Positions 2,926-43,063 are shown, counted from the first letter of the whole stretch. The stretch is 62,712 nt of DNA, filler included, from Klebsormidium nitens (GCA_000708835.1; 4 parts of 4 records of this genome joined end to end with filler, not necessarily neighbours in it); one strand, 5' to 3'. Program-made: numbers and translations. The notes: generated by a model not told the origin, from the letters alone.

Positions 2926-3415
2926 TGCAGGGAAGGAGTGATGTGCCGGTTGGGACGGAGCAGCAGAAAGACCGCACATCTTTTGATTCTGGCTTGGGAT
3001 GTTTGGACCAGCTCTTGCAAACTACACAAAAGGGCACGGAACATACGCAGGTCCTTGTTCAAAGAAACAAGAGGGCACAAAGGCAACTTACGGGAGGAGG
3101 CCGGTAGGTGAGGGGGGGGTTGGTCATGGGGATGAGACGGGCCCAATCAACCTTTGGCAGCTTCACAACCACTGTTTCGCCCTGCACAGTCGGGACAGCA
3201 CAAGGTCAGGGGAGAGTGCTTTTGGAGAACCTAGCAGCTTTGAACACCTCTTGTGACATCCATATGCAGAGCCATTGCGCGACCCAGTCGCTTGGGCCTC
3301 CACCATTCGGGACCTTCATCAGAATCAAGTGACAGACTCTTCAATGCAGATTGTAGGTCATCCCTCAAGTTCCGGAGACTCATCGCTGGGCGTGCTTATA
3401 TGCCCCCGTGCTCAC

Positions 3416-4793: not shown

Positions 4794-5071
4794 CTGAAAA
4801 ATTGAACCAATTCTAACCAATAACACCAAGCATTATCAAGGTCCGTGGGTGGTCCTTAACCAGGTAAATTGCGCATGCCTAGTTTCCAGCTTGTTGCTAG
4901 CTTTGACAATGTGCGGATGAGGGCTGAGGATTCGCAGGAGCTCGATCACGCCTTCCAGCCTTCTAGGCTCGGGTGCGTGCCTCACAAGAGTATTGGACCA
5001 CTCATGTTCTGAGGCTTTGAAAGTGGTGTGAAATACGTGTCCCCTCTTTGCTGCGGTCCCGGTGTTGCACC

Positions 5072-12798: not shown

Positions 12799-13155
12799 TT
12801 CTTGCACACCAGCACTGAACAGGACCTTTGTGTCTATGGGCTCAGATCTGTTGTTGATCAGCACTCGCGGGGGACTCCCTCCACCTCGTGCTGTTTATAA
12901 AGACAATAAAGACAAAAGCCCCTTCTCAATGGAAGGAAGCGTCTTTTCATGCCAAATCTGGAAGGAAATGCTGCCGTAGGGCTCCTCAGATTTGCAAAAC
13001 CTGCGTCTCTATTATTCTAAGTAGGTAGTGTGTTGCTGTTGATAAACTGTGCTCAGAGCTTTCTGCACTTTCCAGCTGCCTTCATGTAGGTAGGTACCTA
13101 TTAGTATGGGCCCTCCTTGGCTCTTCTGTTGACAGCTAGGCTTTCCTGAGGCTCA

Positions 13156-13703
13156 GGGGCGATTCGCACCGGGGCAATTTTGCAGATCAGATTGGACCTC
13201 TTATCTGATCTGAAAGTTTCTCAGATCAAATAAGCCAATCTGATCTGCGCATAACCCGGGTAGCTTTCAGATAAGCGAAACTGCGCCGTTTTCCAGATCA
13301 GATAAGCACAAGTCAGATTGGAAGCCAGGAAAAGCTTCCAATTTGCACTTCGACGATAAAAGTGTCGATTGTACTGGTGCACGCATGATGTACACAGGGT
13401 GTACTGAGAAGGTACACAACTTTGCCTTGGCCGAGTACAAAAATGTACTCTAAAATGGACCCCCCACCTATCCTTTTAGCTCTACAGGCAAAGTCGTCTC
13501 GTCGTTTTGCTTTCTCAGATTCGACTTGAATCCGCAGAGCAATCTGGCCTCATATGCGAACGTTGCGCAAATTGAATCCGCGAATCTGCGCATATGTGCG
13601 AATGCTCCAACTTTCAGATCCACCAATCTGCGCTTATGTGCGAATGAATTTCAGATTCGTTATCTGGAAAGTTGGCCTTATCTGCCTGGGTGCGAATCGC
13701 CCC
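13156..13703. mobile_element. PIF/Harbinger (Tourist-like) MITE, 548 bp
   Basis: Perfect 15-bp TIRs GGGGCGATTCGCACC (13156-13170) and GGTGCGAATCGCCCC (13689-13703), with a 3-bp TCA duplication at 13153-13155 and 13704-13706. Many internal TCAGAT/ATCTGA repeats, including a 14-bp inverted pair at 13182-13195 and 13235-13248. No coding capacity. Confidence 0.8.
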
Positions 13704-13800
13704 TCAGTGATGTGGATCAGTGACAGTGAAGGAGGCGATGTCCTAGCTAATGTCGAACCTTCCCATCCTCGTGGCGACCACGGAACCGATCTTTCTGCTA

Positions 13801-14118
13801 CAGCAGTTTCGGGGCAGGCTTCCCGGTTGCGTTCTATAGATAGGGTGTATATAACTTACGCTAAATTTAGTCTAAGTTTAGTTGCGTTACCAGACCAATT
13901 GACGTCATAGATGAGACCAATATTGATACGTGGCAAAGACTCGGCGCGTCAGATGGGCCCTGAGCAGCGGATCTACGGCTCGGTGCTCACCTTGGTTTTA
14001 AATGACGTCAAAGCAAAAGCTAAAACTTAGACTAAATAGCCTAAACACAGACTAGAATTAGACCCTAAATACACCCTATCTATCGAACGCAACCGGGAAG
14101 CCTGCCCCGAAACTGCTG
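13801..14118. mobile_element. Tc1/mariner (Stowaway-like) MITE, 318 bp
   Basis: About 50-bp TIRs CAGCAGTTTCGGGGCAGGCTTCCCGGTTGCGTTC[T/G]ATAGATAGGGTGTAT with one mismatch, flanked by TA on both sides (13799-13800, 14119-14120). Weaker internal symmetry continues (TTTAGTCTAAG and TGACGTCAT in both orientations). Confidence 0.85.
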
Positions 14119-14175
14119 TACCAAGTCGCCGCGCCGTGATGCAGATTCGGTAACGGCTCCGTTACCATTCAGTGG

Positions 14176-14369
14176 GTATGAACAGTCTGGCACACCGGGC
14201 TGATCAGCTGCAGCACCGGGACTAGCACACCGACAAACGAAAGGGGAATCCTCGCCCCTTCCGCAGCGGATGGCCGGGTTCGAGAATCGAACAACACGAC
14301 CTTTCGGTCCAACCCCTTTTAGTGTGCTAGGTTAAGCACGACGCTCAACCAACTGAGCTAGCCCGAGGA
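14176..14369 (-). mobile_element. tRNA-derived SINE-like insert or tRNA pseudogene (tRNA-Ile-like head) between 21-bp direct repeats
   Basis: The minus strand reads GGGC-TAGCTCAGTTGGTTGAGCGTCGTGCTTAA...AAGGTCGTGTT-GTTCGATTC...CCCGGCCA, with A box and B box, a broken acceptor stem and extra sequence after the anticodon loop, followed by ~95 nt of non-tRNA body. An identical 21-mer GGCTCCGTTACCATTCAGTGG lies at 14155-14175 and 14370-14390. Confidence 0.6.
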
Positions 14370-14696
14370 GGCTCCGTTACCATTCAGTGGCCCGCAGGAT
14401 CGAGTCCGCAACCAATTAAGGACAAGGGTCCGAACTAGCATGAGGAGGAGCTATCTTTAAGGAGCTGCAGCGCAATGGTGCCCATCTGTGCACAGCATGC
14501 ATTGCGATTTGCACATGCCTTGATGAACCATATTTTGAAATTTGAGACGCAGTGGCGGCTGAGGGTGCGGCTACCACTAGACTTGATGCCACCTTTGATG
14601 GTAGACCCTTCCGTCCTCCAGAATGTGGCATACATTGAGGTCCTGACTTCGAGGCACTGGTGATTGTTTGTTGGTTGAGTTGACGAAGTACTGGCG

Positions 14697-17427
14697 ATGG
14701 CTTTGCGGCGCGCGCTCCTTTCATTGAAGGCACCCAGCTTTCACGCGCCATCTCGGGCATTGACGAGCAGTCACATGATTGCTGATTTGTCTCTTGATCG
14801 AGACATTGCCGAGGAAAGTGGTTGCAGTGAAGCGCAGGAAAGGTAAGTAAAAAGCAAATATGTCGGTCCCTGCATCACCGCTGTGCACCACTTGCTGCTG
14901 AATCCACTGGCACCCACCGCTACGATTGTTGATCCAATGAAGTTCAAGAGAATTCGACCAAAGGTGAGACGGGAGATTGGAGCCCACAAAAGGATTGAAA
15001 ACTTCAGTTGTAGACATATGAAGCTGGCCACATTGGTGGGAACCTCATGTGTTGGGAACTCAGCAATCAAGGCCACTCGACAGGGTGTGCGAGTGCACTT
15101 TCTTCTCATCAGCGGCAGTTCTGTTTACACCTCCTCCCACTGATCCTTGCTTTTCCTTCAGGCCTGCCTGTGCACCCAGCTCTGAAGCGCCCTCCACATC
15201 GTACACTCCGTCTCCGCCCTTCCCGCTGTTCCACTTGCACCGGGCAGCATTCCACCATGCTGTAGTGCACGCCGCGCCCGAGGCAGCTGCGCTGAGCTCT
15301 GGCGTGTCTCCGAGTGCCCTGGCGTCCATGGTGGCAGCGGGTCAGCAAATGAAGTCAGGGGGGACAGGCGGGGGGGGCACAACTCCAGGCACCAAGAACG
15401 GCCTCTGGAGGGGCGAACCTATGAAGCAGCTCACCATTGGGCTCAAGGTGAGGCGCGGCGTCAACGTGGCGCGCAATTGGGCGGTAGGAACGGAGGTGCA
15501 TCTGTGATTGGGAGACTTGTTGCCACTGTATTCATAGCTTTTTGCCAGGATCTAGCCCAGGGCAGTGTGTTCCAAACTTCGCGTGGGAGAGCTGATGAAC
15601 CTGAAGAAGGGTCGATAGCAGCAGAAGGCAAGGACTCTGTTGAAGTCAGGGGGAGATAAGGATAATCTCCCCTCTCTTTTTGGCTCTGTTTGTCCTTCCG
15701 CAGATCCTTCTGGTTCTTGTCATGCAACGCGTTTTGCTGTTTCTAGAGTCCCGTCAGTGGACGCACAGTCGATCGAACACAAGGGCATACCAACGCCCAA
15801 CAATACCAGCGACCTACGGAAACGAATATGGCTTGGCCAGCCGCTTTTGACATAGAAATGGGGCGATGAAAGTCAAATACCCGAACCTGGAGCGTGCTAT
15901 CTGTTGCCCCATGTTGAACGAGCACTGACCGGCACTTCGCCATCCAACCTGCGGACGTGCCCCACCCCCCGGCAATCGGAGGTCCGGGCGTTTGTAAGCG
16001 AGAGGCCGGAACGAACTGGTATCAATATTGCATTTCTTTACATGTACATGTACAGCGGATTCAGCGGTCTGACGTCATTCAGATGCACCAGCGATAGCAA
16101 CCTGGCGGAGAACTGGGAGTAAGCAGAGCAAACGACCGCTCGAGCGGGTCAGAGCATTGGAAGTCCCTTATGATCCTTGTGATCCCTTGATGAATCTTGC
16201 CTTCCCTTGCACTGTAGCGCATCGGGGGCCGCAATAACACGGGTCGCACCACCATCTGGCACCGCGGCGGGGGCCACAAGCGGCTATACCGCGTGATTGA
16301 CTTCAAGCGGCAGGGCCCGCTGGTGAACGACGTGCCAGCGATGGTGCAGCGCATCGAGTACGACCCCAACCGCAATGCGCACATTGCTCTCATTCGCTAC
16401 GTCAGCGGGCACGTGGCGTACATCCTGGCGCCAGAGGGGCTGGCGGCGGGGGACCCGGTCATGGCGGGGCAGCACGTGGACATCAAGCCGGGGAATGCGC
16501 TGCCCCTTGGAAACATACCCAGGTGGGGTGTCAGGCACGGCGGCCACAAACGGACAAAGACCAGCGAGCGCGTTCCTGCCAAGAAGCGTAACAAGGGAGC
16601 GTGCCTTGCGGTGTTCGTACTCGTCCAACAGATCGTTTCGTTATTCTTGTCGCTCTACCTGGCTCGCTCTACCCTGTCCAGTTCCTGGTCCTGTGAGCAT
16701 GCAGGGCCTGTCGTGCCTTCCTAGCTACAGCAAGGGTGGCTTCCTGATGACTCCGTCTGCTGTGCAGGGGTACTGTGATCCACAACATCGAGCTGACCCC
16801 CGGGCGAGGCGGGCAGCTGGTGCGGGCGGCTGGGGCGTCCGCGCAGCTCATTGGCCAAGTGGACCGCTACTCCCAGGTCAGCCCCGCTTGACGAACTGGG
16901 AAGGAGGCCAACTGTGCAGATTGGCCAACGTCTTAGCCCCGCTTGTTCCGTCCAATCAAATGCGGATGCAGCACTGATTGACTGTTTCATCCCTCTGGTA
17001 ACGCGGCATATCCTGAAAGCTTAGCTGGAGTTGTCCTCCACGAACGTGCATGTAAGCGGCCCGTTTTGGCAGAGTAGATGTTTATCTGCAAGCCCGTCCG
17101 CAGGTCCGGCTTCAGAGCGGGGAGATGCGCATGATCCTGGCCAAGTGCATGGCCACGGTGGGCAGTGTGTCGAACGCCAACTACCACAACATCAGTTGGG
17201 GCAAGGCCGGCAAGTCGCGCTGGCTGGGGTGGCGACCAACGGTGCGCGGTGTGGCCATGAACCCTGTGGACCATCCCCACGGAGGTGGTGAGGGTAAGAC
17301 GTCGGGGGGGCGGAAGGGCAGCATGTCGCCTTGGGCGAAACCGGCAAAGGGGGGCAAGACGAGAAACAAGAAGAAGGCCAGCACAAAGCTGATCATGTCG
17401 CGACGGAAAAAGCTGTCAGCAAGGTAG
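14697..17427 (+). CDS. RPL2: Nuclear-encoded mitochondrial ribosomal protein uL2, full length, 5 exons (14697-14842, 15162-15447, 16218-16522, 16768-16876, 17104-17427)
   Basis: L2 motifs [100 protein letters not shown] resembles the alphaproteobacterial/mitochondrial type. Exon 1 begins [25 protein letters not shown], which is R/S/A/L-rich and presequence-like. Splice phases join in frame. Confidence 0.9.
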
Positions 17428-26705: not shown

Positions 26706-26720
26706 ATCAGCGTTTGTGCA

Positions 26721-26880
26721 CACTGTCGATCCTGTATTGAAACAACAAAAAATCAACACTGAATAAAATCAACACTGGGTTTAATGGATGATCAACGTTG
26801 ATTAAGTATCAACAGCCAATAAACAACCAAAATCAACAACTGAGCTGTTGAATTTGCTTGTGATTTGTTTTCAACATAGG
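26721..26880. repeat. Left TIR and subterminal TCAAC repeats
   Basis: At least 6 [A/T]TCAAC or GTTGA motifs in ~150 bp of AT-rich sequence following CACTG. Confidence 0.75.
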
Positions 26881-27529
26881 ATCAAGGACGTTTTCAATTA
26901 CGGCATGCCTACTTGATAAAGCGTACACCGCGTGTTGATTTACTGCCATTTCAACGGAGCTCGTAAGACACGGAATCACGACATGAACCTGTTTGTCTGA
27001 GAAGCATGCATCATACATGAACGCATGGTTGGAGTCGTGTTGAAGTTTCTTGAAGCCACTGCATCCGTATACAACACGGAATGTTTCATTCAGCGCGTCA
27101 GCACGCTCTTTCAGACAACAATTTAGAGTTCTTGATACGGACAGAGTTGCAAAATCAGGTAACGACCATGTAACTTCAAGACTGAGTATCTCAACGGGCA
27201 AATCTCGTTGCTTAAACTACTGCCTCGGGGTTTGCTGCAGTCTCGTTGGCTTGCTCCGACGAACCAGACCCATCTCTATCCGCTCTGTCCGCTGCTGCCA
27301 GTGCCTTTGCACGCTCTGCTACACGGCCCTGAAGCCTCATCGGACAAACGGAAGGGTCTTCCGGTGCCACAACGAGTACAAAAGCGCTAACTCGAGCCTC
27401 TCCTGCTAGAGCCTCTTCTCGTACCCGAAGCATCTTCGCCTCTTGCTTCTCCAACCGCTTGATGCCACGGAAGTGTAGCTCCAGCTGCATCAAAGCCGGA
27501 GGCCATGTCAGCCTAGTGCCAGGCATCAT
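26833..27529 (-). CDS. Hypothetical protein or fragments at the left end of the transposon (ORFs 27212-27529 and 26833-27201)
   Basis: Two adjacent minus-strand ORFs (105 and 122 aa) in different frames with protein-like composition. No recognisable motif; they may be spliced or frameshifted. Confidence 0.3.
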
Positions 27530-27809
27530 GATATGATATCGTTTTGAATTGTAAGTGAGGACTCTGCACGTCTTTAATTAGCCGAGTTGGACCATGTATC
27601 GGGCCGAAGTTTTGAATCTACATCAGAATCTCCGACTACAGGGGCTCCACAAGAACGAGGATTATCTTGCCAGACCCTGCCGAAACGAGCTGGCTTTCCC
27701 TTATCTGATTTTTATACAAGCGATTCCATGCGACAGCAACTTCTGCATTTTGTCAGGAAGATAAAGTCCTTTGAAGCGAGTTCGTTCTCAGCACCCTGAT
27801 TTGTCCCGA

Positions 27810-30800
27810 TCACTTTGAAACGCATCCGCACTTGCAGGCTAAATGAGCCACATAATGGCAGAGGTCAACTAGACAGTGTTTAAGAATACGTACCACAACC
27901 TCGACCATTGCAAGCTGAGCGATCGTCGCGATAAGCTGATCAGGTACGGGCTGATTGTCGACGTCCACGTTGCACGCCTTCGCAAGCACTGTCCGGAAGC
28001 GGAGGTCGCCGTAAGCGTCCGTACCTGCCTTGCGATAGGCGTCACCTGTCAACATAATCGGACAATCAAGGAAATCAGCTTAACATCTCAGCGAAGCGAA
28101 TTAGTTCAGAACATTATAGTGATGCCAAGTCACTACGACAAGTGTACCAAGACATCCAGAACATTTCCGAAGCAGGGTACAGCAGATCTTTGTTGAGAAT
28201 AGGACGTAAGTCTAGCTCAAGGCATGTCTGATCTGCAAAGTACTGCCTGCCTGTGCACAGTAGATGCAGTACATCTGCTTCTCCCTAGCAGGACTTGCAA
28301 ATGACAAAACGTTTGCTGTCTGCATACTCACGATCAGAAGCAAAAACCAGAATCAAAGAGTCAATTCGTGCTGACTGGTTGCCAACCCTTTGGGCACAGT
28401 GCTCATCGATGAAACCTTGCCTGCCAGAAGCTCGGTGGTGACCCTCGACCAATCTTCAGTTCCAGTCGCTGGCAAGTTGTAGCACTTTGTACCCGCTCCG
28501 CGAATCTTGGACACAAGCTGGCCCCTTTTCATGCGAAACTTGTCCATTTGGTGAGGTTGAATGAGGTCTTCGTAGAGCTCCTCGAAGAGCTCCTCTTGCT
28601 CTGGGTCAGGTGATACTCGGAGTGCGAGCTGGGTGTTGCTCCTCATGAGCTCGGAGTCAGCGACCCCGGATGTGAGCAGGCTCAGGTTGACAGCATCGGA
28701 AACCAGGAGCTGCACAAAAAACACTCTGTTAATGAAAGGATTGCGAATAACTTTTAACAGGTCACTGTTCGATGCATTGTCCGCAAAGATCACAATGGTG
28801 TTTAGACCTACTGGCTAAAGCACCTGGAACATGAAGCAATCAGATGGACCCCTTGATTGTGAGAGAAGCCCTTCTTATAGATAGCCAGATTACGAAGCGG
28901 AGCTAAGTGCAACTCAGACTTTGCCACGGACATGACTTGAGCAAAGCTTGAAGAGGTCTAAGATCGCATATGCTCGCTCACAGAGTTCTCTGGTTCTTCG
29001 CTTTTGAGTTGTTGATCTTACTTTGGTGGTGGACTTGGCGGAGCTGAGGAGCTTGGGGTTTGCTTTGAGCCTCTCGAGTAGCCCAAGCTGTTGCTCGGAC
29101 GCTTCAGCCTGCAGAACATCTTGTTTAGTAAGTCTTTGGTGATGTGCTCTGACCGAACATGGCAAGGTGGAATCTGTTTCTCCTAGTACTGCCTCTCCCT
29201 TTCGTAGGGACAATTCTGCTGTTTTCACGCAACGAAGAAACTTCAAACGATGCTGTTGCTCAACGCTACCTTGGCTTTAAATACTCACTTTGAGATGTTT
29301 CCAAGCTCGTAGTAGGTTTGGATATGATGGACACAATGATAGTCTAAATCGAACTCACTATCCTGTTGAACAACCAGTCTTCCAAACAGGCCTGGCATTG
29401 TTGCAGAGAACAACTTCAACGTTCAACGTCCGAGATGCTCAACTGAAGGCTGTTGTTTCCACTAAGAACAAGCAGGCAGCTTAATTACACACCAATCTTA
29501 CTTCAAGATGTGCAGAGATGACATTGCATAAGCTTCCCATTCAAAGTGGATGTCGCTCATTGAATAAGATAAGTGCTACTTTGCAGCTCACCTGTTGAGT
29601 CACTGTCACAGAGGACGTTGCGGGGTCAGAACTTTGCTGGCTCGACCCCGATTTTGACTTCTTGAAGCAGTTGAGAAGCTGATGCATTGCCTTCTCCATC
29701 CTGTCGTTGCGCGCCAGCTGCTCAGCCTGGGCCTGCTGCATTTTCAGATGTGACATGAGCAAAAGATTGAGGTCGAAACCGGCTCCAGTGGATGCCGCGT
29801 TCAGCACCAGTTCGCCGGCGGTACTCCGGCAGCTTTTGGCTTGAGGCTTTCCACCTGAGTCAGAGGAAGGGACAGGGATCAAGACCTGATTACTTGCGGA
29901 GCTCTTGAAGTCTCAAGACTTTGCCTGTCCATTTCAAAACTTGGAGCAACTTTTGCAAGACATCCATCTCTTATGAAAGATGAATCGCCTACTTTGAAGA
30001 GCTGAGCAAACTTATGCTTGCAAAACTGGATCGACGCAAGTCATTGCACAAAGCATTCTTTGGTGAAGATCAGAAAAGCGCCTACCATTTTCAGTCCTAT
30101 TGAAGACGATGAGACACACAGTTCCAATAACCTACCCTTATCGCGTGGTACAGGGATGATTGCACCACTGTTTCCAGCTTTCTTCTTCTTTTTGCGAGGT
30201 TTTTCTTTCCCTGGAATCGTTGCCATCAGGTCAGCAAGGGGGTCTTCCTCAGCACTGCCGCCATCAGCTGTACCACCTGGTAGATTAAGAAAAAGGGTTG
30301 ACTGCTTCTTGATAGAAGAGATGCTCCATTGTCCTATGTAAGCTTCAGCTATTGAGCTTTTGTGACAAGAGGCTGTGAAGTTGGGTCACGAATTTCTGCG
30401 AAGATACATAGACCAAGTGGAACGCTGCCCTATTGATGTTGAAGTTACTTGATGCTGGAATGCTGGAGCCTAAACCAGTGTCAGGTAGCACAATAAGCAT
30501 CCAAGTGCAGGAGACTGAGTCAATTGACCATCCAAGCCCAGTCTGACTTGTCTTGCTGAGATTGGCATAAGCCCTAGACAGCACATTCTTTTATTCTAGA
30601 AACCTTGGCTCATTTCTTCCTGGTTTAGAGTAGAAAGGGACAGAAACGTTCATCATCATTGCGCCTCGTCTTGACAAGAGATCTTCTGAACATTCAGACT
30701 CATATTCATAGGTTCCATTTCAGTAATGCATAACTCATTTCAGGACCTTTCCGAGTGCTCACCATCAGGACCCAGCTCCTTGGCAACGTCCTCCTCCTCC

Positions 30801-31312
30801 AGATCATCATCGCTATCGTCGTCGCTCGCAGGGTCTTTCTCAGCATCACTCTCGTTGTACTCCGAACCTGACAGCTCAGGCGAAGACTCTTTGCCGGCTC
30901 CCCTAGTGCCGCCAGCAGCACCACCATCCTTCTCCGACTCGTCATCGCTCGACTCCGAATCGTCCTGGAACAGAGACGTCATCTGGGGCCTATTTCTTTT
31001 GCCATTGGGATTGATGTCAGATTGACCAGCTGCAGTTGCGATGGCTGCCTTTGCTTTAGCAAGAGCGGCTGGATTTTTGGTGATGGCAGTCAACACTGTT
31101 GCAAGCTCTCCAGCGTCATCCCCTAGCATGTGCGCAAGGCGAGCCTCTTCAGTGGTGGCTGATCTTCTAGGCCTTGCCAGCGGCTGAACAGGAAGAGAGC
31201 CGCCATTGTCCTTGTCTCTGTTTGCTGCGCCACCACCATTGGCTTTGGCCCTGCTGGTCCTGCCACCAGCCGAAGCGGTGGCATCTCCTTTCCTTCCTCC
31301 GCCGCCAGCCAT
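27810..31312 (-). CDS. Large multi-exon gene of unknown function inside the transposon (candidate second, TnpA-like, gene)
   Basis: Chain of minus-strand ORFs with splice signals. Exon 31312-30763 has an acidic/Gly tract; exon ~30277-30137 is GGTADGGSAEEDPLADLMATIPGKEKPRKKKKKAG (NLS-like); further ORFs at 29541-29882, 28914-29246, 28353-28793 and 27810-28055. Internal exon joins are only partly resolved. Confidence 0.55.
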
Positions 31313-32165
31313 CGATCATTCACGGAGAGGGAGCTTGGAGCTCTTGTCGTTAAAAAGGCAAGGCTGGGTTTTACCTAGGCACAGGTACAGGTAAGATGCC
31401 TGATCGTTGATGGCAGTGATGCAGAGCCCGTCTCCAGCTTCTCCAGCGCTCCAGGCTCCAGCTGATAGGTAGTGAGCGCTCGCCGCCGCTGTCACGTCAT
31501 GGAAGTTTTGAAATTCATCGTGAGTCGCGGGATCAAAATTGTATCGTCGATACTTGATCTGTGGCAATCGAACGGTGCTGATACTGGTAGCTTCCAGCCA
31601 CAACAAGGAACGCACACCGTCGAATGCTCGATTTGCTACTCTTATCTCCGTCCTCTAAGCCCTCCCGCCACTTCAAGAGCCTAATCTGAATCGTCCATTC
31701 GCATCACCAATAGTACTGTATTATCAACCCAGCCTAGTTCGCGAAGCCTTCGCAGGCTAACACAGCAAGATGGCGTCAATCTGGTAATGGCTTCCACCCT
31801 TGAGAGCAGCTTGCTGTCCATGGTTGCGCTGGAAGATCGGAAGCAAAAGTGCTACGAAAGCTTTTTACTGATGACAAAAAAGCTGTCTGTAGGTTTTCAC
31901 GTTGTATCTTCCAGCACTTTCTGGTGGTAACCATTCATGCGATTTGGCTCATCCGAACACTGTGACTGCTACTACTGGTAGCCTGAGCGTGCATGAGGCG
32001 TCTTGAGGAGTTGAACCAGGTCTTCAACCTAGGGCTGGCATCACTACGTACTTGGCATTCCCTTGCAATTCAGGGCACTGACCGTCATGTTACAGTCTCC
32101 ATAGACAGTAGGGGTGTGCAGGTCACACGCCGCGAAGGAGCAGATTCTGCTGGTGACAGGAGTTT

Positions 32166-33460
32166 GTGAGTAGCCAGAATCGCAAGGCGGTGCAGATGGA
32201 GAGCAGCGGTTTGGGAGTTGGCGTCCGCCTCATTAGCAAAGCTGAGCTGACGAGCACTTGGGAATTTGAGGAGCCGTTGTACCCATCATTGCAGCGCTTG
32301 CAGTTGAGAGATATGCCGCGCGAGCTTGTAAGGGTAACTGCGCCCGCATCATTAGTTGAGCCTCTTCATGTTTACCTTCATGCGGCGCTGTCAAAAGAGA
32401 AGGACTCTTCGGGCAAGTGGCGGGCCCTCTTCATGAGGTATTACCAATCAGAACGGAAACTTTGGGACTCTGCCTTCCTCCGATTTCAACCGGAGTACCG
32501 TCTGAAACAGATTGAAGGCTTTTTCCACAAACTGAAGCGAGGGAACGTTGCAAAGAAGCCGGTCGTTCGAGTCACCACAGTGGTGGCCTTGCAGCGGGCG
32601 AGTGGTTTTGGCAGCAGGCAAGTGCTACTTCAGTGAAACGACAGCATACTCTCACAACTTAGGGGTTTTCAAGTCTGCCAGGTGTTTTGAGTCTGCCGGG
32701 TAATTCTGGGCCGAAGAAAAACTGAAAAGCCTTGTGTTCAAGCTCTTTTGAGGGTAGCATTACAAGGTGTCATTGTTGACATGGTTTCAAGGTGGCATGG
32801 TTGATTGGTAGACTGCTTCCATGCTTCTCTTATTCACTGGTTTTTATCCAAACCCTCATGTCAAAACGTGCTGTAACACTGTCAACAAGCTCGCATAAGT
32901 GGAGTGGCACTTGAATTCTACTACAGGCCCTTGCAAACTCAAAAGGTGCAAAATCTGTCTGGTTGCATTGAACTTCAATCTGGCTCCATACCTGTCAGCC
33001 GCGTGACTTTTGTTCATATTCTCCAGGCTGTACAATTTCTCCGATCAATCAATCTATTCGTGTGGTTGATGCACCTTCATCTCTGCAGGGACTGCCACCC
33101 AGGGACGGAGGTGGAGAGATCGGGCGAGCAAAGCGCAGGTGGGTCTGCCAATGCTGAGAGACTCAGCGCTGAGCATGCAGGAGCGGTCGTAGTAGAAGGG
33201 GAAAGAGCTGGCAGTTTAGAAGGGCGCGGAAGTGCTGAGGCGCGTGCGAACGAAGGGGTATGGCCCCAGAAGTCGGGTGAGAAGGCTTTGGTCGTGGCAA
33301 CCGAAGAGCAGGGCGCTGGGCGGGCGGGAAAGAGCGGCAGCGGGGGCTGCAATAGCGCGGCGGCAAGCGCTTCAAGCTGTGAAGCTGCATCAGGCATCAA
33401 CGGAGGGGCGAATGGCGGTGCAGGAGGTTTCAAAAATGAGTCAACAGAAAGTGGAGGCAA
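32166..33460 (+). CDS. Probable upstream exons of the transposon-borne kinase gene (orphan domain plus Ala/Gly/Ser linker)
   Basis: ORF 32166-32636 (156 aa, globular-looking) and ORF segment ~33089-33460 bounded by ctgcag and ag|gtatgt, same strand and directly upstream of the kinase exon. The connection is inferred. Confidence 0.4.
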
Positions 33461-33945
33461 GGTATGTGTTGTATTCAGTCACACTGTTGTGCCCGGTTCT
33501 TGCTTGGAAAGCACAGAAACGGGTTACAAGTCAGCCATGCTTGTGTGACAGCGTGGCTTTCAGTGAAATTTGTCAAGTGGGAGCTCGTACTTGCTGTTCT
33601 GGATCGTGACAGAAGCCAATTCTTGCACCGCGCAGATTGGCGGCACTCGAGGTCGCCAACTTGTGCAGCCTTCTTGTTGTGCCCGCTTTGCTTTTGAGAG
33701 GATTCTGGACAGTCTTGTTGATTTGATCCGGTCAACGAACAAGTTTCGTTTATATTCTTTGCCTTGACATTTCAAAGATTCACTTCAAGATCTTTCGTCC
33801 AATTGTTTGGGTTTCGCCAGATTTGTACCGTTATGCACCTTGGCCAATGACAAGCGCTTGTTGAGGCATCCCAGTTTTGCTCAGGTGTTCCCGCTCGAGT
33901 CGTTGAGGCATCTTCAAGAACCTCCGAATTGAAAATACCGTTCTT

Positions 33946-34866
33946 TTGCAGTCCCTGCGGATGCTGACGATAGAGGAGCGAAACATTCTGCACCTCCCAG
34001 CTGCGGCCGACGCTGTGGGGAGTGGTTCGTATGGAAGGGTATATGAAGTTTTGGTTGAGGGGGGGTCTCCTTGGGCCCGCGTCTTTCCCGATCGTGTTGA
34101 GACCAGGATCGCTGTCAAAGAGTACTGCGCTAAGGGCCTAAGTTATCATCACAGTACTGTTTATACGGTTGAGAATGCTTCTTACGAGGTTATCTTAGCA
34201 TCGGCGTTTTCCCATGACAACGTCGTCAAGCCTTTCGCTGTGTGCATCGGCGGCTCCGGGTTACCTTTGGCTTTCTTCCCTTTCTTCAACCAGGGGTCTT
34301 TACGTTCTGTCCTTCGAAAACGGGAAAACCGCAGCTTGGGAAAGCCCCTCGCTAAGCTGATGTGGACGGCTAGGGTCCTCGTAGGGGCGTGCTTGGATCT
34401 CTTGCGGGCAATTCAGCACGTTCACAGCATGGGTATTGTACATAACGACTTGACTCCCAATAATATTCTCGTCCACTTCAACGAGTGTGATCTGTCTATC
34501 AAGCTGGCTGTGCACGATTTCGGTGTAGCCAGTAGACTTGTTGACCGTAAGAGTCATCGGAGTTTCAAGTCTGTCAAAGAGGAAGACGAGTACTCGAAGA
34601 GGTACAGCTATGTCGCTCGAGAGCTCATCTTAGGGGGCTTCTTTTCGACAGAAACCGACATGTATTCTGTAGGTCTTCTATTGGGGGACATTTTAGGTCT
34701 TGATCGGGCCTCGGTTAGAAACGAGTTGTTGGAGTCAAGAGAATGGAGTACGGTGCTCCTCTTGATAGCGGCGCTGTCAGAAAAAGTCCCGCATAAGAGA
34801 CCCACTTGTCATCGGCTACTTGAATCTTTTGAAACATTGTGGCGAGATTACCAAGATAAAGACTAA
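33946..34866 (+). CDS. Ser/Thr-type protein kinase domain (non-RD), transposon cargo
   Basis: Subdomains visible: GSGSYGRVY, IAVKEY, E of helix C (NASYE), HNDLTPNNILV, HDFG, YVARE, TDMYSVG, KRPT. A probable acceptor ttttgcag at 33950 suggests upstream exons. Confidence 0.92.
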   Translation: MQSLRMLTIEERNILHLPAAADAVGSGSYGRVYEVLVEGGSPWARVFPDRVETRIAVKEYCAKGLSYHHSTVYTVENASYEVILASAFSHDNVVKPFAVCIGGSGLPLAFFPFFNQGSLRSVLRKRENRSLGKPLAKLMWTARVLVGACLDLLRAIQHVHSMGIVHNDLTPNNILVHFNECDLSIKLAVHDFGVASRLVDRKSHRSFKSVKEEDEYSKRYSYVARELILGGFFSTETDMYSVGLLLGDILGLDRASVRNELLESREWSTVLLLIAALSEKVPHKRPTCHRLLESFETLWRDYQDKD

Positions 34867-35459
34867 CAGACTTGGACAAGAGATGGACTCAAAAGATATT
34901 GTTTGGCCCAACGGTTTATGCAAATGGAATTGGGCTTGCACACCGGTTGCTTGTATGCCTAAAGTATATCTACACAAGTTGATGCATGTATTCTTTCATC
35001 ATAACTCGATCCAAAGTCCATGTGCGATATGATCATGATATTTTAGGTACAACCGACCACTGAAATTATACAACTTGGAGCGGCTGATCCTCGGATGGAC
35101 CCTAATTTTCAACATCGCCCAACAGACATATGCAAGCACTAAAGACTTTGGAATCCGACCACTCCACATTTTCAATGATCGGCCAACATGCATATTATCG
35201 TTGTGGCGCACACAGAGTCCATTGTCGAGGGCTTCACTTAAATCGTTTGTGGTTTAAAATAACAGCTTGTACATGCCGGGTGACACAAATGCAATCGAAG
35301 TATACAAATAAGTCGTCGATCGATCTCAAGCGCTATACTTGATCGGCCGCGCAGAGCTCGATCCATGGCATACGTCCAGGGCCGGGGCATCAACGAGGGT
35401 AAAGTCCATGCAAGTACAAATGGGCCGGTTCAAGCTCGCCAAATCAATGGTTAGGGAGA

Positions 35460-35672
35460 CCCATGTTGAATTCGCGGCCCAAAGGCTTTTGTAACGAGCA
35501 TATCAGTGGTTTCGCAAACCATTGAAATAAGCCTTAACGCTTCTGTAACGGGCAAATCAATGGTTTCGCGAACCATGGAAATAGGCGTTACGGCTTCTGT
35601 AACGGGCAAATCAATGGTTTCATGTACCATTGAAATAGGCCTTACGGCTTTTGAGTACGGGGAAATCAATGA
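35460..35672. repeat. 54-bp minisatellite, about 4 units
   Basis: GGTTTC...CCAT[T/G]GAAATA.GC.TTA..GCTTCTGTAACGGGCAAATCAAT units start at 35508, 35562 and 35616, with a degenerate unit before them. Confidence 0.9.
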
Positions 35673-35904
35673 CTTCAGAAACCATTGAATTGAGTTAGAA
35701 TCATGTTCGATTCAGGTGGGAGACTCGAGACTGGCAAACACTCCTTGCGCGGACATTCTGGCTGGCCGCTTGGCGCGGGGGCCGCCCCCGTATGTCGCAG
35801 CTCGCGGTTACATCCACCGCCATCATGGAGGCAGATAGTGCGTTGTACGGCGCACATGCACCCAGAGCCGACGATCAAATGAACTCGTTCTCAGGCACGC
35901 CCTT

Positions 35905-36427
35905 TTGCGTCCGTGCCTGATGGAGACGACGTGTCGCCTGCGTTGTGATGCCGCCCGCCGCCCTCGCGCACTGGCATGGCGATCATATTCGAAGTGTCTG
36001 TCACACGCAGTGCACCCCCCTCGAAGGGCCCAATCGATCGATGACGACCACGTTTTATACGTGCTGCATCCTTTGTCAAGAGCGATTGCGCGCCTGCATC
36101 ATCGCCCGAATATTCGAACTTTGGAGCACGATCCCCGGTTGTTCGAATGCCTCCATTACGTTAACCCCGCAGACTTCTTGCGAGAGAATATTCCGCACGC
36201 TGTTCAACGTGCTCGCGGCAGTCTTCGCAAGCCAGTTGGACCCAAGAGTGGCATGTACCACATGCTCACGCATATTATTTTGGACTCGACGCCTGCGCGC
36301 GGTACCACGCATTATTGATTGCAGAGCATCGATGCGTCAAAATGTTGACGCATTCGCATTGTTGAGCTCGTGCTGCTGGCGCGATCCAGAAAATGTTGCA
36401 TATGTCCAGCTGCTGCACACTTATTGA
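35905..36427 (+). CDS. Hypothetical small ORF(s) between the kinase and the transposase
   Basis: Two overlapping same-strand frames are open (137 aa and a Cys-rich 160 aa with CILC and CTTC). No family recognised. Confidence 0.3.
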
Positions 36428-36706
36428 GTTGGATTACATATAGCATGCCACATGATATGCGCAGTAGCATATACAGCATGCCATGATATGCGCAGTAGCA
36501 TATACAATTTGAACCGACCTTACCATGAGCTGCCAAGGACGACCTACAGCAGGTTAATCAATTCACATGATCAAGCGATTGACTAGTCGCCTTCAATAAA
36601 ACATTTTCAATTGTCCATATTTACAAGTCCAATCAAGCGCTCTTGAATCGGATGATGCAATAAGTAGGCTTATTAAGTTACTTTGCTGTGTCCTAGCAAT
36701 GATGTC

Positions 36707-39700
36707 CTAGACCAAACGAGTTTCGTTGACATAAAACAATCCCTCGTTGTTTGGATCTGGAAGGATGTGCTCAAGCCGCTTGATTGTTTGGAGCCCTATG
36801 ACGTCGTATCGAACCTGCTCGACACCATCGAGCCCCTTCACCATCTCCCATTTCAGCCGGACGCTCTTGGTCCCGTCCTGTGGGCCCGTTCTTTGATACC
36901 ACTTGACGAAAGCGAAGGCGCGCTTCATTCCCCTGTGATCAACACAGGTGAACAGCAAACGAAGCTGTGCATACCATTCAGTTCGCGCCAGCTGCCCTTG
37001 CCGCTCCGGCCCAGCTCCATTCACGACCACGTCGCTAAAAACGGGCCGCTTGTTCTGCCCGAAGCATGGGTTCGCCCGAGCTAACTCCGTCTTCAAACTC
37101 CCGTCAGGCTGCCGTGCTCTCGCAATCGCAAGCGTCTTGTGACGTCTGACCTTCAAAAGCGAATAAGAGGCGGACCCATTCAGCTTCGCAACTTCTCAAT
37201 GCAAGTCCTCGTCCGCCCAGTGACTTTATCACAGCTTGACACTAGGTTCGGCAAGGACGGTCAAAAGCACAACACTTTAAGCAGGATAGATCAAAGCGAG
37301 GTTCAAAGATTGAAGACCGAGCAACATGCCGTGGTCCAGATTAACACAGCCAGCAAACGTGTTGGCTCCGATTTTCAAAAGCTTCCAACCTGTACCCTCG
37401 CACACTTCAGATCGCCGGAGTGATTTGTGCGTCACGGCCGGCAGCCACAGCGTCGAGAGATAGTCGCATCAATTGGTCACTAATCTCCTCACCTTGGCGT
37501 CTTGGACAGTGGGAAGGTTTGCGAGCAAAGCTTGATTGCCTCGGGGGTTTCCTCCGAGATGCGCGCGAAGTACGCGCTCGAGATGGACGAGCTCGGGCTG
37601 TTCGAGAAGGACCGGATCTCGATTGCCGTCCCGCAGGGACTGACTGGACAGGCGGAAGAGTCGAAGAGGGCGACTTTTCACGCTCAGGAGGTTGGTCCGT
37701 TGGGCCCTCGCCTGCATCCACAAGCGAAACCCCTATTCACAAGGGTCCTTGATAGCGTTGCAAAGCATGCACGACAGCCGAACTCTGGTTGGGCAGGCAG
37801 ACACAATTGATACGAGGGCCACGAAACATCACCAGGCAAGTACGCAGCCATCGAAACGACAAGATATTATCTGAAGTGGCAAGCTTAAAAAGCAAGGCGG
37901 AATGATCGACGATATTGTAAAACAGCCCCCTGATTGAGCGCTTAAAGAACTTCAGTAGATTACCATTGAAAAGTGCTCCTAAGCCGGAACTTGACGAGAA
38001 GAAACGAGAAGAGACTGATGCACAGAACAAAAGCAAAAGCAGATGACTCGAGAAGAGGGCAGCACTCGCAACGGATCCTCGATGCACAGCAACAAGAGTA
38101 CGGAAAATATCTTACCCGTTTCCGGAGAGCTGTCTCCTTTCGAGTTGGGATGAACTCGTCTTTCCCCGCTTTTAGAAGGCGAAGTCGGTCAGTCACGTGT
38201 TTGACCATTTGCATCTGCATCTGGTTTTTGTTAGAAGCCCTGAACGGATTTTTCGCCGTACGCTTATGACTTGACTCGTAGTTGTCAGCAGAGTACTCCC
38301 CAGAAAGACCCTTCAGACTGACAGACTCAGTAGAATGCGCATTCGTGTGTACCTTCACGGTGCCCCAACCCGAAGCCTGGTAAGGCAGTATCCTCTTCAT
38401 CTTAGCTAGGACCCTATCCCAATCAGCGTCTACCTTGGCCAAGGACTCGTCAGTGTGACCGCTCGTTTTGTGCCTGACCGCGAAGTCAAGGTACACATCA
38501 GCAAAATCTCGAAAGAGCGGGGTTATCTCGTCACGGCCATTGGGCAGCGTGAAGACGCCCACGACGGCGTACACGGCCACCTGCGAAGATACAAGGTCAA
38601 TTTTTTACATAGGTTGAGAGCGCAAGGTTCAGGTATGGCGAAAATGGAAGAGAAATCAAATCGGACACCAAAGATACTCGTTACGTTCCTCCGTTCATCA
38701 AAGCATACATGCCCGTGACTACAAGGCCCAGCTTTCCGGTCGTTTCAAGTCGCTCGAGAACAGATCAAACTAGTCAGCTTCACTTTGCATCACACCCACC
38801 CAGAGTCCAGAGGAGGCTTGTGAAAACAGCAAATCGGGTCACCGGTCAAAGTGAACGAAGAAATCGTTGAAATCTTGAAGAACGATAAGGGCGCTGGCTG
38901 AATGGGACAACTTCGTTACCAACAAAGAGCAGAAAGCATGGGCAACGCAGCCAGGGATTTCTTTCATGAATCACCAGCCCAAAGACGGAGCAACTTCCAG
39001 AAGCAATGTTCAATGATCGACAAGACGCACAAAGCAAGAATCATTGTTACCCACCGACAGACTGTGGCGATGCTCGAAGGCTGTCACGAAAGACGAACCG
39101 CCCAGGAAGTCGATGTTGGGTAGCCGGAGACCGGGGTGTGTGTTTCGGAAAGAGAGGAAGCGCTTGTTCGCTAAAGCCAGGCGCTTGTTCCCCTTCTTGG
39201 CTCCAAACTTGTCTTTGGCGTAGTTGCCCACGAGCTCAAAGAGCATGGGTATAACCCCGTGGTCGAGCTGCGAAAATAGAGCATGGCAGTGCTCTTCACC
39301 AGTTTTGTCGAAACTCGAATCCATTTCGGAGAGGACAAGAAGACAACATTCGTCTTGCCAAAGGGAGTCAAAGAATCAGCAAAAAGGCTCGATTGAGATG
39401 TTAGTTAAAGCAGTGAATCATATGCGCGACTGAAGATAAGAAACCAAGCGGAACCATTACTAAAGATGCGATCTTCACAAGACATACCTGGTGCATGATC
39501 TCTGGTAGTATGGAACGGTAGACGTTCCCGGACTCCGTGTTGCCGCCCTTCCAACCCCATAGCGCGTTCTGCGCATGAAAGCTGTGCTCGTATCAAAACA
39601 GGACCAGATTCGACGGCAAAAAGCACGTTGTTAGACTTGCGATCAGTTTGGTACTATGTGATTAGCAGTAAAGATCTGCTCAAGCTCTGTTCATTCCGAA

Positions 39701-42493
39701 ATCAAAAAGCCACTGATTCGACTTCATTCGAATCAGAATATCGAAGCACTGCAGTCAGCCACAACGTGTTGTACCAGACGAGCAGATAAGCGTGATCTGA
39801 ACGACCAAGAAACAGAAAACCTCTTCGATGCTGTGAAGGGGGGTCTACATGAGCCTACTATCATACTCAGACTTTCAAAGGTGCAAAGGGTAGATAACTT
39901 TTCTTACACTGAGACCTTTCCTTTGGCGTAGATGGGTTCAAAACTTGCACAAGAAACTCCACATACCTGAACTGGGTTCACCGAGAAACCTTTGAGCAGG
40001 GACTCAATGACCGCGTTACACCCGCCCTTCTCGTGGAGCGTCACGACCTGATTGTAAATCTGCTTCATCTTCGTCTCTGTCCGTAGATCAGCACGTCTGC
40101 CTGCAGCTAGATCGTGAAGTTCGGTGGCCAATACAAGACACGTGTGACAAGGGCAGTTAGTCTTGTTGCCGCTCTTTGTACCTGCGGCAACACAGCCTTC
40201 CTGCCAATCTGTCACGACGGCATATATCATGGGCCAGACTGTCGTCTTGACGCCATGCGCATCCTCTACCTCCATGCCCCTGCACAACAGGCAAGTTCAG
40301 CAGATTCGTCAGCAACCTGCTCAACAATCCCCCTTTAAACATGAAAGCTTGAAGTAGATATCCAAAGAAGAGAGACTTGTTGGATGCTCTAGTGACTATG
40401 GCCCAGAAGAAGAATCTTCACGATGCTCAAATTGCCACAATGATCGATTGCCCCCAACCGAGACGTGCTCAGAAATGCACAGACCTAGACAACCAAAGTT
40501 CAAGGGCCAAGCAAGAACCTCACGTCCAGGTGAAGAGCTTCAAGCGTTCAAGAATCCTTCGGTACGACTCATGCCATATCTGGAGCTGCCGCAGACGGAG
40601 CGCCTCCGAGCCGTCTGAGAGCCCCGACTCTGGACGTGGTTCCACGTACGGAATGTAACCCACAAGAACCCAGCCAGAGCTTTTCCCCCTCAGCTCCTTG
40701 GGGATATTGGCCAGGCTTAAAATCACAGGGCGCACTTTCAAACGTCCACTCAAACTCAGCGGAGTCCCATCGCTGTAAAGTATGAGCGCCAGTACTGTGT
40801 CTGACGCCGGGATGAGTTTCTGCAAGAAACAGAAACAACATACGATGTATACTCCACATGTCTTTCACACAGTCAGTTCGAAGAGTCTAACCAGATTCAA
40901 AACCTCAAATAGAGCTCCGCCCCCAGGAATATTGAGAACGTTGCGTTGGAGCTGAAGTTCAACGGGGTATGAAGTGGCACTTTGAACTTGGGTCTAAAAA
41001 CCCCAACACAAGAAGAAGTACGAGCCAAGATCTAGGGACACTACAGAGGAGTCAGATTTTACAAGCAAAAACCGCAGTAGGAGTCATACTGGAACTGGTT
41101 GCTTTGGACAGAAACAAGACATAGCCCAAGGCATAGCCCAAGGCATAGCCCGCGCCTCTTAAGGACTCTGAGTTCGTACCTGCATCTCATTCCACCAGAT
41201 CCCAGAATGGGCCCCTTTGTATCGACGCTTCCCATCTCTATCACGCAGCACCATCGGCTTCAGGATCAACTTTCCAGCATGGAGGGGATCTTTCCACAAG
41301 CCCAAGACCGAGGTGTACGCATCGCAATAATCGAGAAAGAGGTCTTGTCCATCTGTTGAGCTCGCTAGATTGATTCTAGACCAACCTTCCTGCATGGCAG
41401 TACATATAACCGCGAGTTAGCTACCACATCCTTGTGTACTAGAGCCTGGCAGCTCGACAAGCCCATAGAAAGAATGATGCAGCGAGAAGTCATGCTCATC
41501 ACTCAAAGTAGCCTATGCAATAGATCAGATTGATGATTGCTTGCATCCTGTGCTAGACAATTGAAGTGCCCACACCAGCAAAACGTTTGAGTTCTGAATC
41601 TAGCAAAGACGATAAGGCCAAGGCCAACATTAAACTGGTAGCCAGTGACACGGGCTTCAAGTATTGACACAGGTTTGAGTCAACAGAGACTTCGTCGCCA
41701 AAAACACTGGGCCTTCCTCTGCCATGACGCGCTGACAAAGGATGTCGGCCAAGCTTGCACAGATCTGGAGTGCGGTTGGGGGCCTTACTGATTGTGGGAG
41801 CTGGTCAATATACCGCTGCACATCCTTGTCATTCTTCAAACCAGGAACCTCAGCAAAGCTGAGCAACCAATTCTGGTCCTTCCGAGAGAGCCCTTTGCCC
41901 CCATTGCAGTTTTTGATAAACGCTGCAAACTCTTGCCTCTTCTCCTCATCAGGATCTTCAGAAGCAACGGTGTTTGAACCGTCGTTGCAAGGGGTCTCTT
42001 CAAACCGCGCGCCTATTTGCTGACCAACGGCAGATGTCCTGGGCTCTGGGCTAATCAGGTGGTGGTAGGAAGTATCAGCTTCTTGGGAGCCTGTGCCAGT
42101 TTCAGCTACATTTTCAGTGACATTTTGGGGTTCAGGAGGAGTAAGGGGATCAGCGATCGGCGACAGAGGGTTTTCATGGAAAGGCTGAGCTTGGAACGCA
42201 TTAAACTGTCGGAGTGGCGATGATGGCCCTTGAGAACAAGTTGAGGAAACAGGTGCAGCACTAGATGCAGCCTGAGGAGTGCAACCGCCTTGCCTCCGCT
42301 GGTGGTTGGTCAGTTGCTGATAGGAGACAAACTTTCTTGTACACCTACGGCACACAATTCTGGCACCCACGGGACTGGAAGGCCCGTTATTGCTCCGTGA
42401 TGCTGCTCGTCTTGTGGGAGAGAGATGGGGAAAAAGAGTATCAATGAAGTGATTGACCATCGAAACTGCTGCCAAGCTGAACAAAGCTGCCAA
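36707..42493 (-). CDS. Plavaka-type (CACTA/EnSpm-related) transposase, about 9 exons, N-terminal C2H2 finger
   Basis: Exon peptides: CRRCTRKFVSYQQLTNH; DLFLDYCD...LILKP...GKRRYKGAHSGIWWNEMQ; VLALILYSDGTPLSLSGRLKVRPVILSLANIPKELR...WHESYRRIL; VVTDWQEG...CPCHTC; NALWGW...LPEIMHQ|LDHG (exon 39568-39488); KVHTNAH...NYESSHKRTAKNPFRASNK; C-terminal WYAQLRLLF...AFVKWY...YDVI..IKR. These match the recalled Plavaka (PF18759) consensus. No premature stop was seen in the reconstructed exons. Confidence 0.85.
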
Positions 42494-42894
42494 CAGTGAG
42501 TCAAGGCTGCAAGACGCCGGGCCAGGCTTCGGATGACCTGGAATCTACCAAAGTTGGCACTGGTGACGGCCACCTTTTGCCACCAACTTGCTTCAGATGC
42601 TAGTTCCCCTTTGAGACTTGGACCGGGACAGCCATGACCATGCACACAGATCTCCCTAGCTCTCAGCTGCCTGTGGCACAAGCATGCGCAGCAACTACTG
42701 AATTGAAGCACTGGCACCAGTCTTAGCTCAGCTGCCAAGCCTTGTGGCAAGCACTGGCAGCCCGGCCGCCCGGCGGCCGCGCTAATTGTGCCATGCCATG
42801 ATGATCGGATGCCATGATGCAGGAAATACCACGATGTCACGGTTTGGAACGTCGATAAGCTAACCTAGATACTTTCAAGATATTTTTCAGCCGT

Positions 42895-43063
42895 CGATTC
42901 TGTTTCCGTGTTAATTCAACATCTCAATTGCCGGTTGAATAAGCTTCAGTCCTGAATCAACAATCAATCTGCTTGTTGAAAATTTGTCCACGTTGAATCG
43001 ACACTGACTTTTCTGTTGAAATTATTTTACGTTGATTTTTTGTTGATTAAACAGACTTTCGAC
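42895..43063. repeat. Right TIR and subterminal GTTGA/TCAAC repeats
   Basis: At least 8 GTTGA/TCAAC motifs in ~165 bp, mirroring the left end. Confidence 0.75.

Follow-up and report, generated by a model that had tools for sequence, protein, structure and literature searches.

A 16-kb scaffold of the streptophyte alga Klebsormidium nitens is probably a nearly complete Plavaka-type transposon with accessory kinase and orphan genes

Positions 26706–43063 of the 62,712-nt stretch of Klebsormidium nitens DNA analysed here (the window, four parts of assembly GCA_000708835.1 joined end to end with filler) are base-for-base identical to the 16,358-bp scaffold DF237989.1. The host is a filamentous streptophyte alga from a lineage near the base of the land plants. 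Read from left to right, the scaffold carries an orphan gene on the minus strand, a protein kinase gene on the plus strand and a Plavaka DDE transposase gene on the minus strand, set between inverted and subterminal repeats (Table 1). We consider it probable (about 0.85) that DF237989.1 is a single, nearly complete Plavaka-lineage DNA transposon, autonomous and of the cut-and-paste kind, with ends of the PlavakaB type and with the kinase and the orphan as accessory genes. Judged by homology, the scaffold would lack 1 nt of the element on the left and ~20 nt on the right, for a full length of about 16,379 bp (~16.38 kb). An earlier note, made from the sequence alone, had described the whole scaffold as one giant autonomous CACTG/Plavaka element mobilising a kinase as cargo. 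The feature is real and that note read its nature rightly, as essentially one Plavaka-type element of which the kinase is part, but it read the ends wrongly: the CACTG termini, the target-site duplication (TSD) and the length do not stand.

Related copies were gathered by searches with a transposase exon and with the kinase. L009 is the second K. nitens copy, on scaffold DF237105.1; L001, L002 and L007 are contigs of the JGI metagenome 3300060284; L008 is a contig of Logan run SRR20627847; and L012 is a contig of another run that stops inside the left subterminal region. L007 is a complete copy (positions 126–16349, 16,224 bp), and total element length is kept at 16.2–16.4 kb across DF237989.1, L007 and L009. 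When DF237989.1 is compared with the other two, only exon-sized blocks align (~80% nucleotide identity) and the introns and spacers do not. Synonymous divergence (dS; Nei–Gojobori, on the aligned codons of tblastx segments) between the three copies is 0.5–0.8.

Genes of the scaffold

The transposase was assigned to Plavaka by two matches to Pfam PF18759, one in the open reading frame (ORF) at 40523–40864(-) (46.5 bits against a cut-off of 26.3, E 3.8e-12, profile positions 106–196) and one in the ORF at 39907–40296(-) (25.0 bits, E 1.4e-5, profile positions 202–295). Pfam marks the K. nitens paralogue and the L007 genes in the same way, and the transposase match among the ORFs of DF237989.1 was to Plavaka only, with none to Transposase_21. 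In GenBank, this gene is represented on DF237989.1 only by a 507-aa C-terminal fragment. Spliced contigs from the public sequencing run X5 skip seven stretches, each of which has GT..AG borders on the minus strand once its limits are moved by up to 4 nt, a move that does not alter the joined sequence; the eighth intron was placed by conservation with L002, L007 and L009. Given the canonical splice sites and one contig that retains an intron, the simplest reading of the X5 contigs is that they are mRNA. The spliced protein has a weak C2H2-like finger near its N-terminus and contains both AVVTDWQEGCVAAGTKSGNKTNCPCHTC and EIMHQLDHG. With the catalytic residues assigned by eye, NCPCHTC and HQLDH come after the second catalytic Asp, and they are invariant in five copies. 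The ratio of nonsynonymous to synonymous divergence (dN/dS) for the transposase is 0.18.

The kinase gene is absent from the GenBank annotation of DF237989.1. Its product comprises a conserved N-terminal domain of ~140 aa, a low-complexity linker and a TK/TKL-like kinase domain, the last of these matched by Pfam Pkinase on the third and final exon (E 3e-21) and closest, among PDB entries, to ROS, MET and LIMK (E ~1e-12). The second intron is of the GT..AG type and the first (32618–33088) of the GC..AG type; the model stays in frame only with this GC donor (AG/GCAAGT), a common non-canonical type. Homologues are found in L007, L009 and L008, and the motifs GSGSYG, AVKE, HNDLTPNN and DFG are kept in all three, the L008 protein being 52% identical with Lys, Asp, Asn and DFG retained. 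Conservation of these residues across 48% divergence makes it likely that the protein, a non-RD kinase, is active. Both domains of the gene have dN/dS values of 0.14–0.16, compared with 0.52 for the linker. For the N-terminal domain, we found no relatives of known kind and no neighbour in the Atlas, and an AlphaFold model built from four sequences was poor (predicted local distance difference test score, pLDDT, of 49).

Upstream of the kinase gene, alignment with L007, L009 and L008 picked out a conserved non-coding block whose counterparts lie at ~5472–5632 in L007, ~5604–5795 in L009 and 3715–3900 in L008. Within it, a donor-like TGGCGTCAATNTGGTAATGG and an acceptor-like TTGTATCTTTCAG are invariant even in the distant L008. 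The block is probably an intron in the 5' untranslated region of the kinase gene, together with what has the look of a regulatory motif. On L009, the annotated model KFL_001560290 (P0005; 6021–8552) is truncated in the middle of the kinase domain.

The orphan protein has an acidic, lysine-rich N-terminal half of low complexity and a conserved C-terminal half. One of its exons, used as a query, retrieved the 560-aa P0008, which agrees in sequence with the exons here, is listed by NCBI as KFL_010400010 and has DF237989.1 as its sole contig. Its exons have homologues in L007 and L009, with dN/dS of 0.28–0.31. No Pfam family matched it even at E 10, and among 5.8 billion proteins the only full-length relatives were the two K. 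nitens copies; exon-sized fragments occur in other runs, L012 being one such contig. Weak matches in several stretches to P0010–P0012 were rejected as spurious, these being repetitive proteins. By Atlas features, the orphan fell near unnamed basidiomycete and streptophyte clusters only, with DUF6698 and DUF6532 below the reliable range, and its Atlas model was poor (pLDDT 0.42). The annotated KFL_010400010 model omits a coding stretch, ...TKCYNLPATGTEDWSRVTTELLAGK (28416–28490), that is conserved in all relatives.

These genes agree with the earlier note, which had proposed a large spliced orphan on the minus strand (KFL_010400010, its exons conserved in the other two copies) together with a kinase on the plus strand and a Plavaka transposase on the minus strand, both confirmed by Pfam. 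Two further reading frames that it had listed are not gene-like: the orphan ORF at the left, on the minus strand, falls among the subterminal repeats, with stops in its conserved frame, and the small plus-strand ORF at 35921–36424 has no nucleotide match in L007 or L009. An Rfam search gave no match. A viral origin was also considered and dropped, as the IMG/VR contigs that we searched held no relatives of the kinase or the transposase.

Table 1. Features of DF237989.1, in window coordinates
Feature	Positions	Strand	Details
Left terminal inverted repeat	26706..26775	+	element positions 2-71; alignments, inverted-repeat call, shuffle test
Left subterminal region	26706..26960	+	7 TCAAC copies (motif count); 75-78% conserved in L007, L009 and L012
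Orphan accessory gene KFL_010400010 (P0008)	27212..31312	-	7 exons; 560 aa as annotated; exact NCBI protein
Orphan exons 1-4	31312-30761, 30277-30134, ~29860-29590, 29111-29019	-
Orphan exons 5-7	28715-28491, ~28045-27885, 27484-27215	-
Conserved non-coding block	31771..31915	+	~400 nt upstream of the kinase ATG
Accessory kinase gene	32196..34866	+	569 aa; exons 32196-32617, 33089-33461, 33952-34866
Minisatellite	35484..35689	.	54 nt x 3.8 copies; TRF and repeat calls; units partly palindromic (TCAATGGTTTCGCGAACCATTGA-like)
Plavaka DDE transposase gene	36707..42460	-	9 exons, 8 GT..AG introns; 970 aa; frame intact
Transposase exons 1-5	42460-41789, 41389-41180, 40819-40524, 40279-39967, 39568-39488	-
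Transposase exons 6-9	39267-39055, 38580-38116, 37711-37493, 37150-36710	-
Right subterminal region	42900..43063	-	6 GTTGA copies and the inner 50 nt of the inverted repeat (43014-43063)

Element ends and the L007 insertion

Five related ends (both ends of L007, the right end of L009 and those of L001 and L002) all open with CATCAGC(G/A), and the sequence beyond them is unrelated. The related terminus reads CATCAGCG, of which the first C falls just off DF237989.1, the scaffold starting with ATCAGCG. The first 15 nt of the scaffold, ATCAGCGTTTGTGCA, which the earlier note had taken for flanking DNA, align base for base to this terminus with the same spacing to an invariant GTCGA. The scaffold therefore starts at the second base of the element, and the CACTG that does stand at 26721–26725 is internal (element positions 17–21). 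It occurs at one end only: the counterpart is CATACTG at the left end of L007, GATCTTG at the right ends and GTTCTCG in L001 and L002. At the other side, the related right ends extend 20 nt past GTCGA (...TCGAC AAGATCCC...GCTGATG), the form in the relatives being ...TCGAC AAGATCCCAAAA[C/T]GCTGATG, and not the 4 nt that would give the previously proposed ...TCGAC+AGTG at 43067 (TCGACAGTG) and a length of 16,347 bp. The element is accordingly predicted, on the right by homology, to have the ends 5'-CATCAGCG...GCTGATG-3'.

The description of the two ends as colinear, imperfect inverted repeats holds: 26725–26774 pairs with 43014–43063 at 37 of 50 complementary positions (74%), including the common CAACAAAAAATCAAC, a figure reached by 1 in 200,000 random 50-mer pairs drawn from the DF237989.1 piece. 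TCAAC is present seven times in the left 300 nt and GTTGA six times in the right 300 nt, where 0.48 per 300 nt would be expected from the interior (~10-fold enrichment). The left copies, mostly in the form (A/T)ATCAACA, are presumably bound by the transposase or by an accessory protein; in CACTA-like elements, subterminal binding sites are usually laid out in this way, just inside the ends. Metagenome contigs scanned for GTCGA-N13-CAACAAAAAATCAAC gave four chance matches that were otherwise dissimilar.

A second Plavaka subfamily, also with the CATCAGCG terminus, is found in metagenome 3300060284 (L001 7439–7560 and L002 492–612). Its subterminal repeat is TCGAC, not TCAAC, and its transposase is 47–79% identical; the L001 copy sits downstream of an EXS-family gene. 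The switch between TCGAC and TCAAC would fit co-evolution of the repeat with the protein that binds it.

The L007 element sits in a Ty3/gypsy pol gene, cleanly inserted and with a TSD of 2 bp. The copy has TG on either side, and its flanks (1–125 and 16350–16472) match Pfam RT_RNaseH at profile positions 18–61 and 63–103, the absent position corresponding to the split codon; the host site is thus the RNase H part of pol. Excision of the element together with one TG restores an open frame of 81 codons (81 aa), and removal of 0 or 3 flank bases with the element breaks that frame. The TSD of L007 is therefore TG, 2 bp in length, in place of the GCA that the earlier note had expected at DF237989.1. 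Because L007 is nested in a retrotransposon, the metagenome contig ends ~120 nt outside the element on either side.

Mobility and the status of the accessory genes

A series of observations weighs against DF237989.1 being a complete and mobile element. Its own right terminus and both of its flanks lie off the scaffold, the TSD and exact length resting on homology, and Logan contigs from the source sample extend 15 nt, not 20 nt, past 43063. The K. nitens annotation holds just two full copies, which are old with respect to one another (dS 0.5–0.8), and within this species we saw neither empty sites nor polymorphic insertions. Run X5 has its type marked only as 'DNA?', so that its contigs represent mRNA is something we infer. 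Finally, dN/dS and dS, being taken from tblastx segments, are biased downward toward conserved stretches, with the same bias for all genes.

The age of the two K. nitens copies and the lack of an empty site would suit a family that is immobile in this alga, consisting of old duplicates or domesticated loci, with DF237989.1 short because its assembly broke at repeats; purifying selection also fits domestication. We regard this as improbable. Conservation extends beyond the genes to the inverted and subterminal repeats, which domestication would not require, and L007 has inserted cleanly into a retrotransposon. In three independent assemblies, contigs break off inside the element ends or right at them, and the source reads also hold variant contigs that are 90–99% alike, suggesting further, younger copies. 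That DF237989.1 is a free-standing 16-kb scaffold is explained by its being a single element.

Were the kinase and the orphan instead ordinary host genes, caught between separate Plavaka ends or lying beside a transposase and without function for the element, one would not expect what is seen in the three copies. The order orphan(-), kinase(+), transposase(-) is the same in DF237989.1, L007 and L009, between homologous ends, in surroundings that differ from copy to copy: a lone scaffold, a gypsy pol gene and, for L009, the end of a 170-kb scaffold by a coiled-coil gene. The placement of both genes between the same terminal repeats, on which the earlier note had staked its reading, thus holds in L007 and L009, and neither gene was found as an unlinked host gene. 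All three genes are under purifying selection (dN/dS 0.14–0.31), selection on the accessory genes being as strong as that on the transposase, total length is kept, and the orphan has no relatives outside these elements. This collinearity, together with purifying selection in diverged copies, indicates that the kinase and the orphan are, as far as can be judged from sequence, fixed accessory genes and not chance cargo. In favour of host genes are the lack of a biochemical link, the small number of known copies and the kinase of L008, but taken with the points above these leave that explanation very improbable.

L008 merits separate description. The close relatives of the kinase all adjoin a transposase, L008 being the one exception as regards Plavaka: its kinase has the same N-terminal domain and the conserved 5' block, yet neither a Plavaka gene nor the orphan lies within 11.7 kb. 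Tail-to-tail with the kinase homologue lies a 293-aa ORF (8774–9655(-)) that is RAG1/Transib-like by language-model (Atlas) features, at 0.95–0.96, and contains a D...KSG...CxxC stretch as in Plavaka. The ORF had no Pfam or PDB sequence match, BLASTP and hhalign comparisons with the Plavaka core exon were not significant, and a single-sequence model was poor (pLDDT 47). As a lead only, its resemblance to a transposase of the same wider clade speaks against a host-gene origin of the kinase, and L008 raises the prospect of the kinase being carried by transposons of more than one lineage. A bolder proposal, which we put forward tentatively and think rather unlikely, is that the kinase, with or without the orphan, is a portable module exchanged among, and needed by, transposons of the CACTA-Mirage-Chapaev-Transib-Plavaka clade. 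If so, the transposon would encode, in the kinase, a regulator of its transposition or of silencing or repair in the host: a signalling enzyme in the service of a selfish element.

The least probable alternative is a classical CACTA/EnSpm element running from CACTG at 26721 to CAGTG at 43067, with a 3-bp TSD and a 15-nt left flank: CACTG is in place and GTCGA and CAACAAAAAATCAAC are equally spaced at both ends, but the supposed flank shares homology with the outermost 15 nt of L007, L009, L001 and L002, CACTG is conserved at no other end, the 2-bp TSD of L007 at its CATCA/TGATG borders restores the interrupted frame, and the Pfam match is to Plavaka, not Transposase_21.

With DF237989.1 taken as a Plavaka-lineage transposon, a possible mode of action can be outlined. 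The transposase would recognise the inverted repeats and the TCAAC repeats, perhaps via its N-terminal zinc finger, and would excise and reinsert the whole 16-kb unit, its cut being staggered by 2 bp. Both accessory proteins would serve the element rather than the host. The most likely targets of the kinase are the transposition machinery or host factors for chromatin, repair or silencing; the orphan, by analogy with TnpA of En/Spm, may be a partner that binds the repeats or has an architectural role.

Known transposons and minor observations

Plavaka elements were originally defined in fungi, and those of the PlavakaB type in Agaricomycete fungi were reportedly described by Iyer and colleagues in 2014. 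The ends of PlavakaA and PlavakaB have been defined by Kojima (2025; PMC12730594): PlavakaB has CATCA..TGATG termini and a 2–3 bp TSD, its second catalytic Asp is followed by a C(2)C and an H(3-4)H motif, and some members carry one accessory gene. The Klebsormidium family has PF18759, CATCA..TGATG termini, a 2-bp TSD (in L007) and the C(2)C and H(3-4)H motifs; on its termini, TSD and Pfam match it is therefore placed with PlavakaB and not with classical CACTA. Neither the CACT(A/G)...(C/T)AGTG termini of CACTA/EnSpm in the strict sense nor a 3-bp TSD, which breaks the L007 frame, was found. With the Agaricomycete PlavakaB elements it has in common PF18759, both motifs and, in some fungal members, the presence of an accessory gene. 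It differs from them in its streptophyte algal host, its length of 16.4 kb, its eight transposase introns and the nature of the accessory genes, a kinase and an orphan here and a TET/JBP dioxygenase in the fungi.

Plavaka transposases have been reported in streptophyte and green algae (PMC13519894; bioRxiv 10.1101/2025.02.07.637104), and giant Plavaka elements of 17–19 kb with three accessory genes are known from the red algae Bostrychia moritziana and Chondrus crispus (bioRxiv 10.1101/2025.02.11.637652). The same study finds that giant Plavaka dominate in Bostrychia and make up a third of the red-algal genome, and it describes a cassette consisting of PAG1, PAG2 (an N6-adenine DNA methylase, PF01555, with a SET domain, PF00856) and PAG3 (ParB-like with a 2OG oxygenase), as well as conserved inverted-repeat tandem arrays. 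The Klebsormidium element resembles these in its algal host, its giant size and its combination of a Plavaka transposase with a conserved accessory cassette. Unlike them, it carries a kinase and an orphan, its tandem array is not conserved and its copy number is low; Pfam found no PAG2 or PAG3 domains in 20 ORFs or in P0008 and P0013.

En/Spm encodes TnpA and TnpD through alternative splicing. As a CACTA element, it belongs to the same wider DDE clade as the Klebsormidium element and likewise has short inverted repeats with subterminal arrays and more than one element protein. In the Klebsormidium element, by contrast, the two proteins besides the transposase have genes of their own, one of them encoding a kinase.

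A closer parallel in gene content is provided by the TBE elements (Tc1/mariner) of Oxytricha. According to bioRxiv 10.1101/2025.03.17.643836, these encode a 42-kDa transposase, a 57-kDa zinc-finger/kinase ORF and a 22-kDa orphan (Chen & Landweber 2016, cited therein), and the genes are under purifying selection. The same trio of a transposase, a kinase-domain protein and a domain-less orphan, all under purifying selection, is therefore present in both, although TBEs belong to an unrelated transposase superfamily, are ~4 kb long, number tens of thousands of copies and are tied to ciliate genome rearrangement. The likeness between the TBE and Klebsormidium kinases is at the level of the domain.

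To our knowledge, accessory genes are rare in eukaryotic cut-and-paste transposons. Most of those known have DNA or chromatin marks as their target (TET/JBP, SET, methylases and the VANDAL anti-silencing proteins), and a kinase kept under purifying selection in a transposon of a streptophyte alga would extend this range to another type of function. As a precedent for a kinase in a transposon, we found only that of the ciliate TBEs, an uncharacterised ORF, and full-text literature searches turned up neither a description of this family in Klebsormidium nor a Plavaka element reported to hold a kinase. The novelty suggested by the earlier note is overstated, giant Plavaka elements with accessory genes being already described in red algae. 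The analysis further provides CATCA..TGATG ends and a 2-bp TSD for an algal Plavaka, and three corrected K. nitens gene models.

The minisatellite, which had also been listed earlier and was found again as a 54-nt repeat, sits in the non-conserved spacer between the convergent kinase and transposase genes. It is absent from L007 and L009, with no blastn match across 34871–36628, and is probably without function. It recalls the ParB-type arrays beside PAG3 in the red-algal Plavaka elements; a role as a binding array in the style of PAG3 was rejected, the array not being conserved in L007 or L009.

Data from run X6, covering 37064–43063, resemble bisulfite data, with 1,542 short contigs in which the differences are nearly all C>T or G>A. 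Six of the 27 listed converted positions are in CpG, equal to the background share (20%), and this very small sample gives no sign of methylation protecting the CpGs of the element.

In other runs, individual contigs part from the element within the transposase gene or next to it. One from X5 departs at 37650 (exon 8) into 80 letters, and one from X1/X2 at 42461, 1 nt upstream of the transposase ATG, into 255 letters, neither departing sequence having a match in the window. In the source reads, variant sites at 39831/39854 and 41918–41929 stand at about half depth. Together, the departing contigs and the half-depth variants suggest that the same strains hold at least one further, closer copy or rearranged version of the element.

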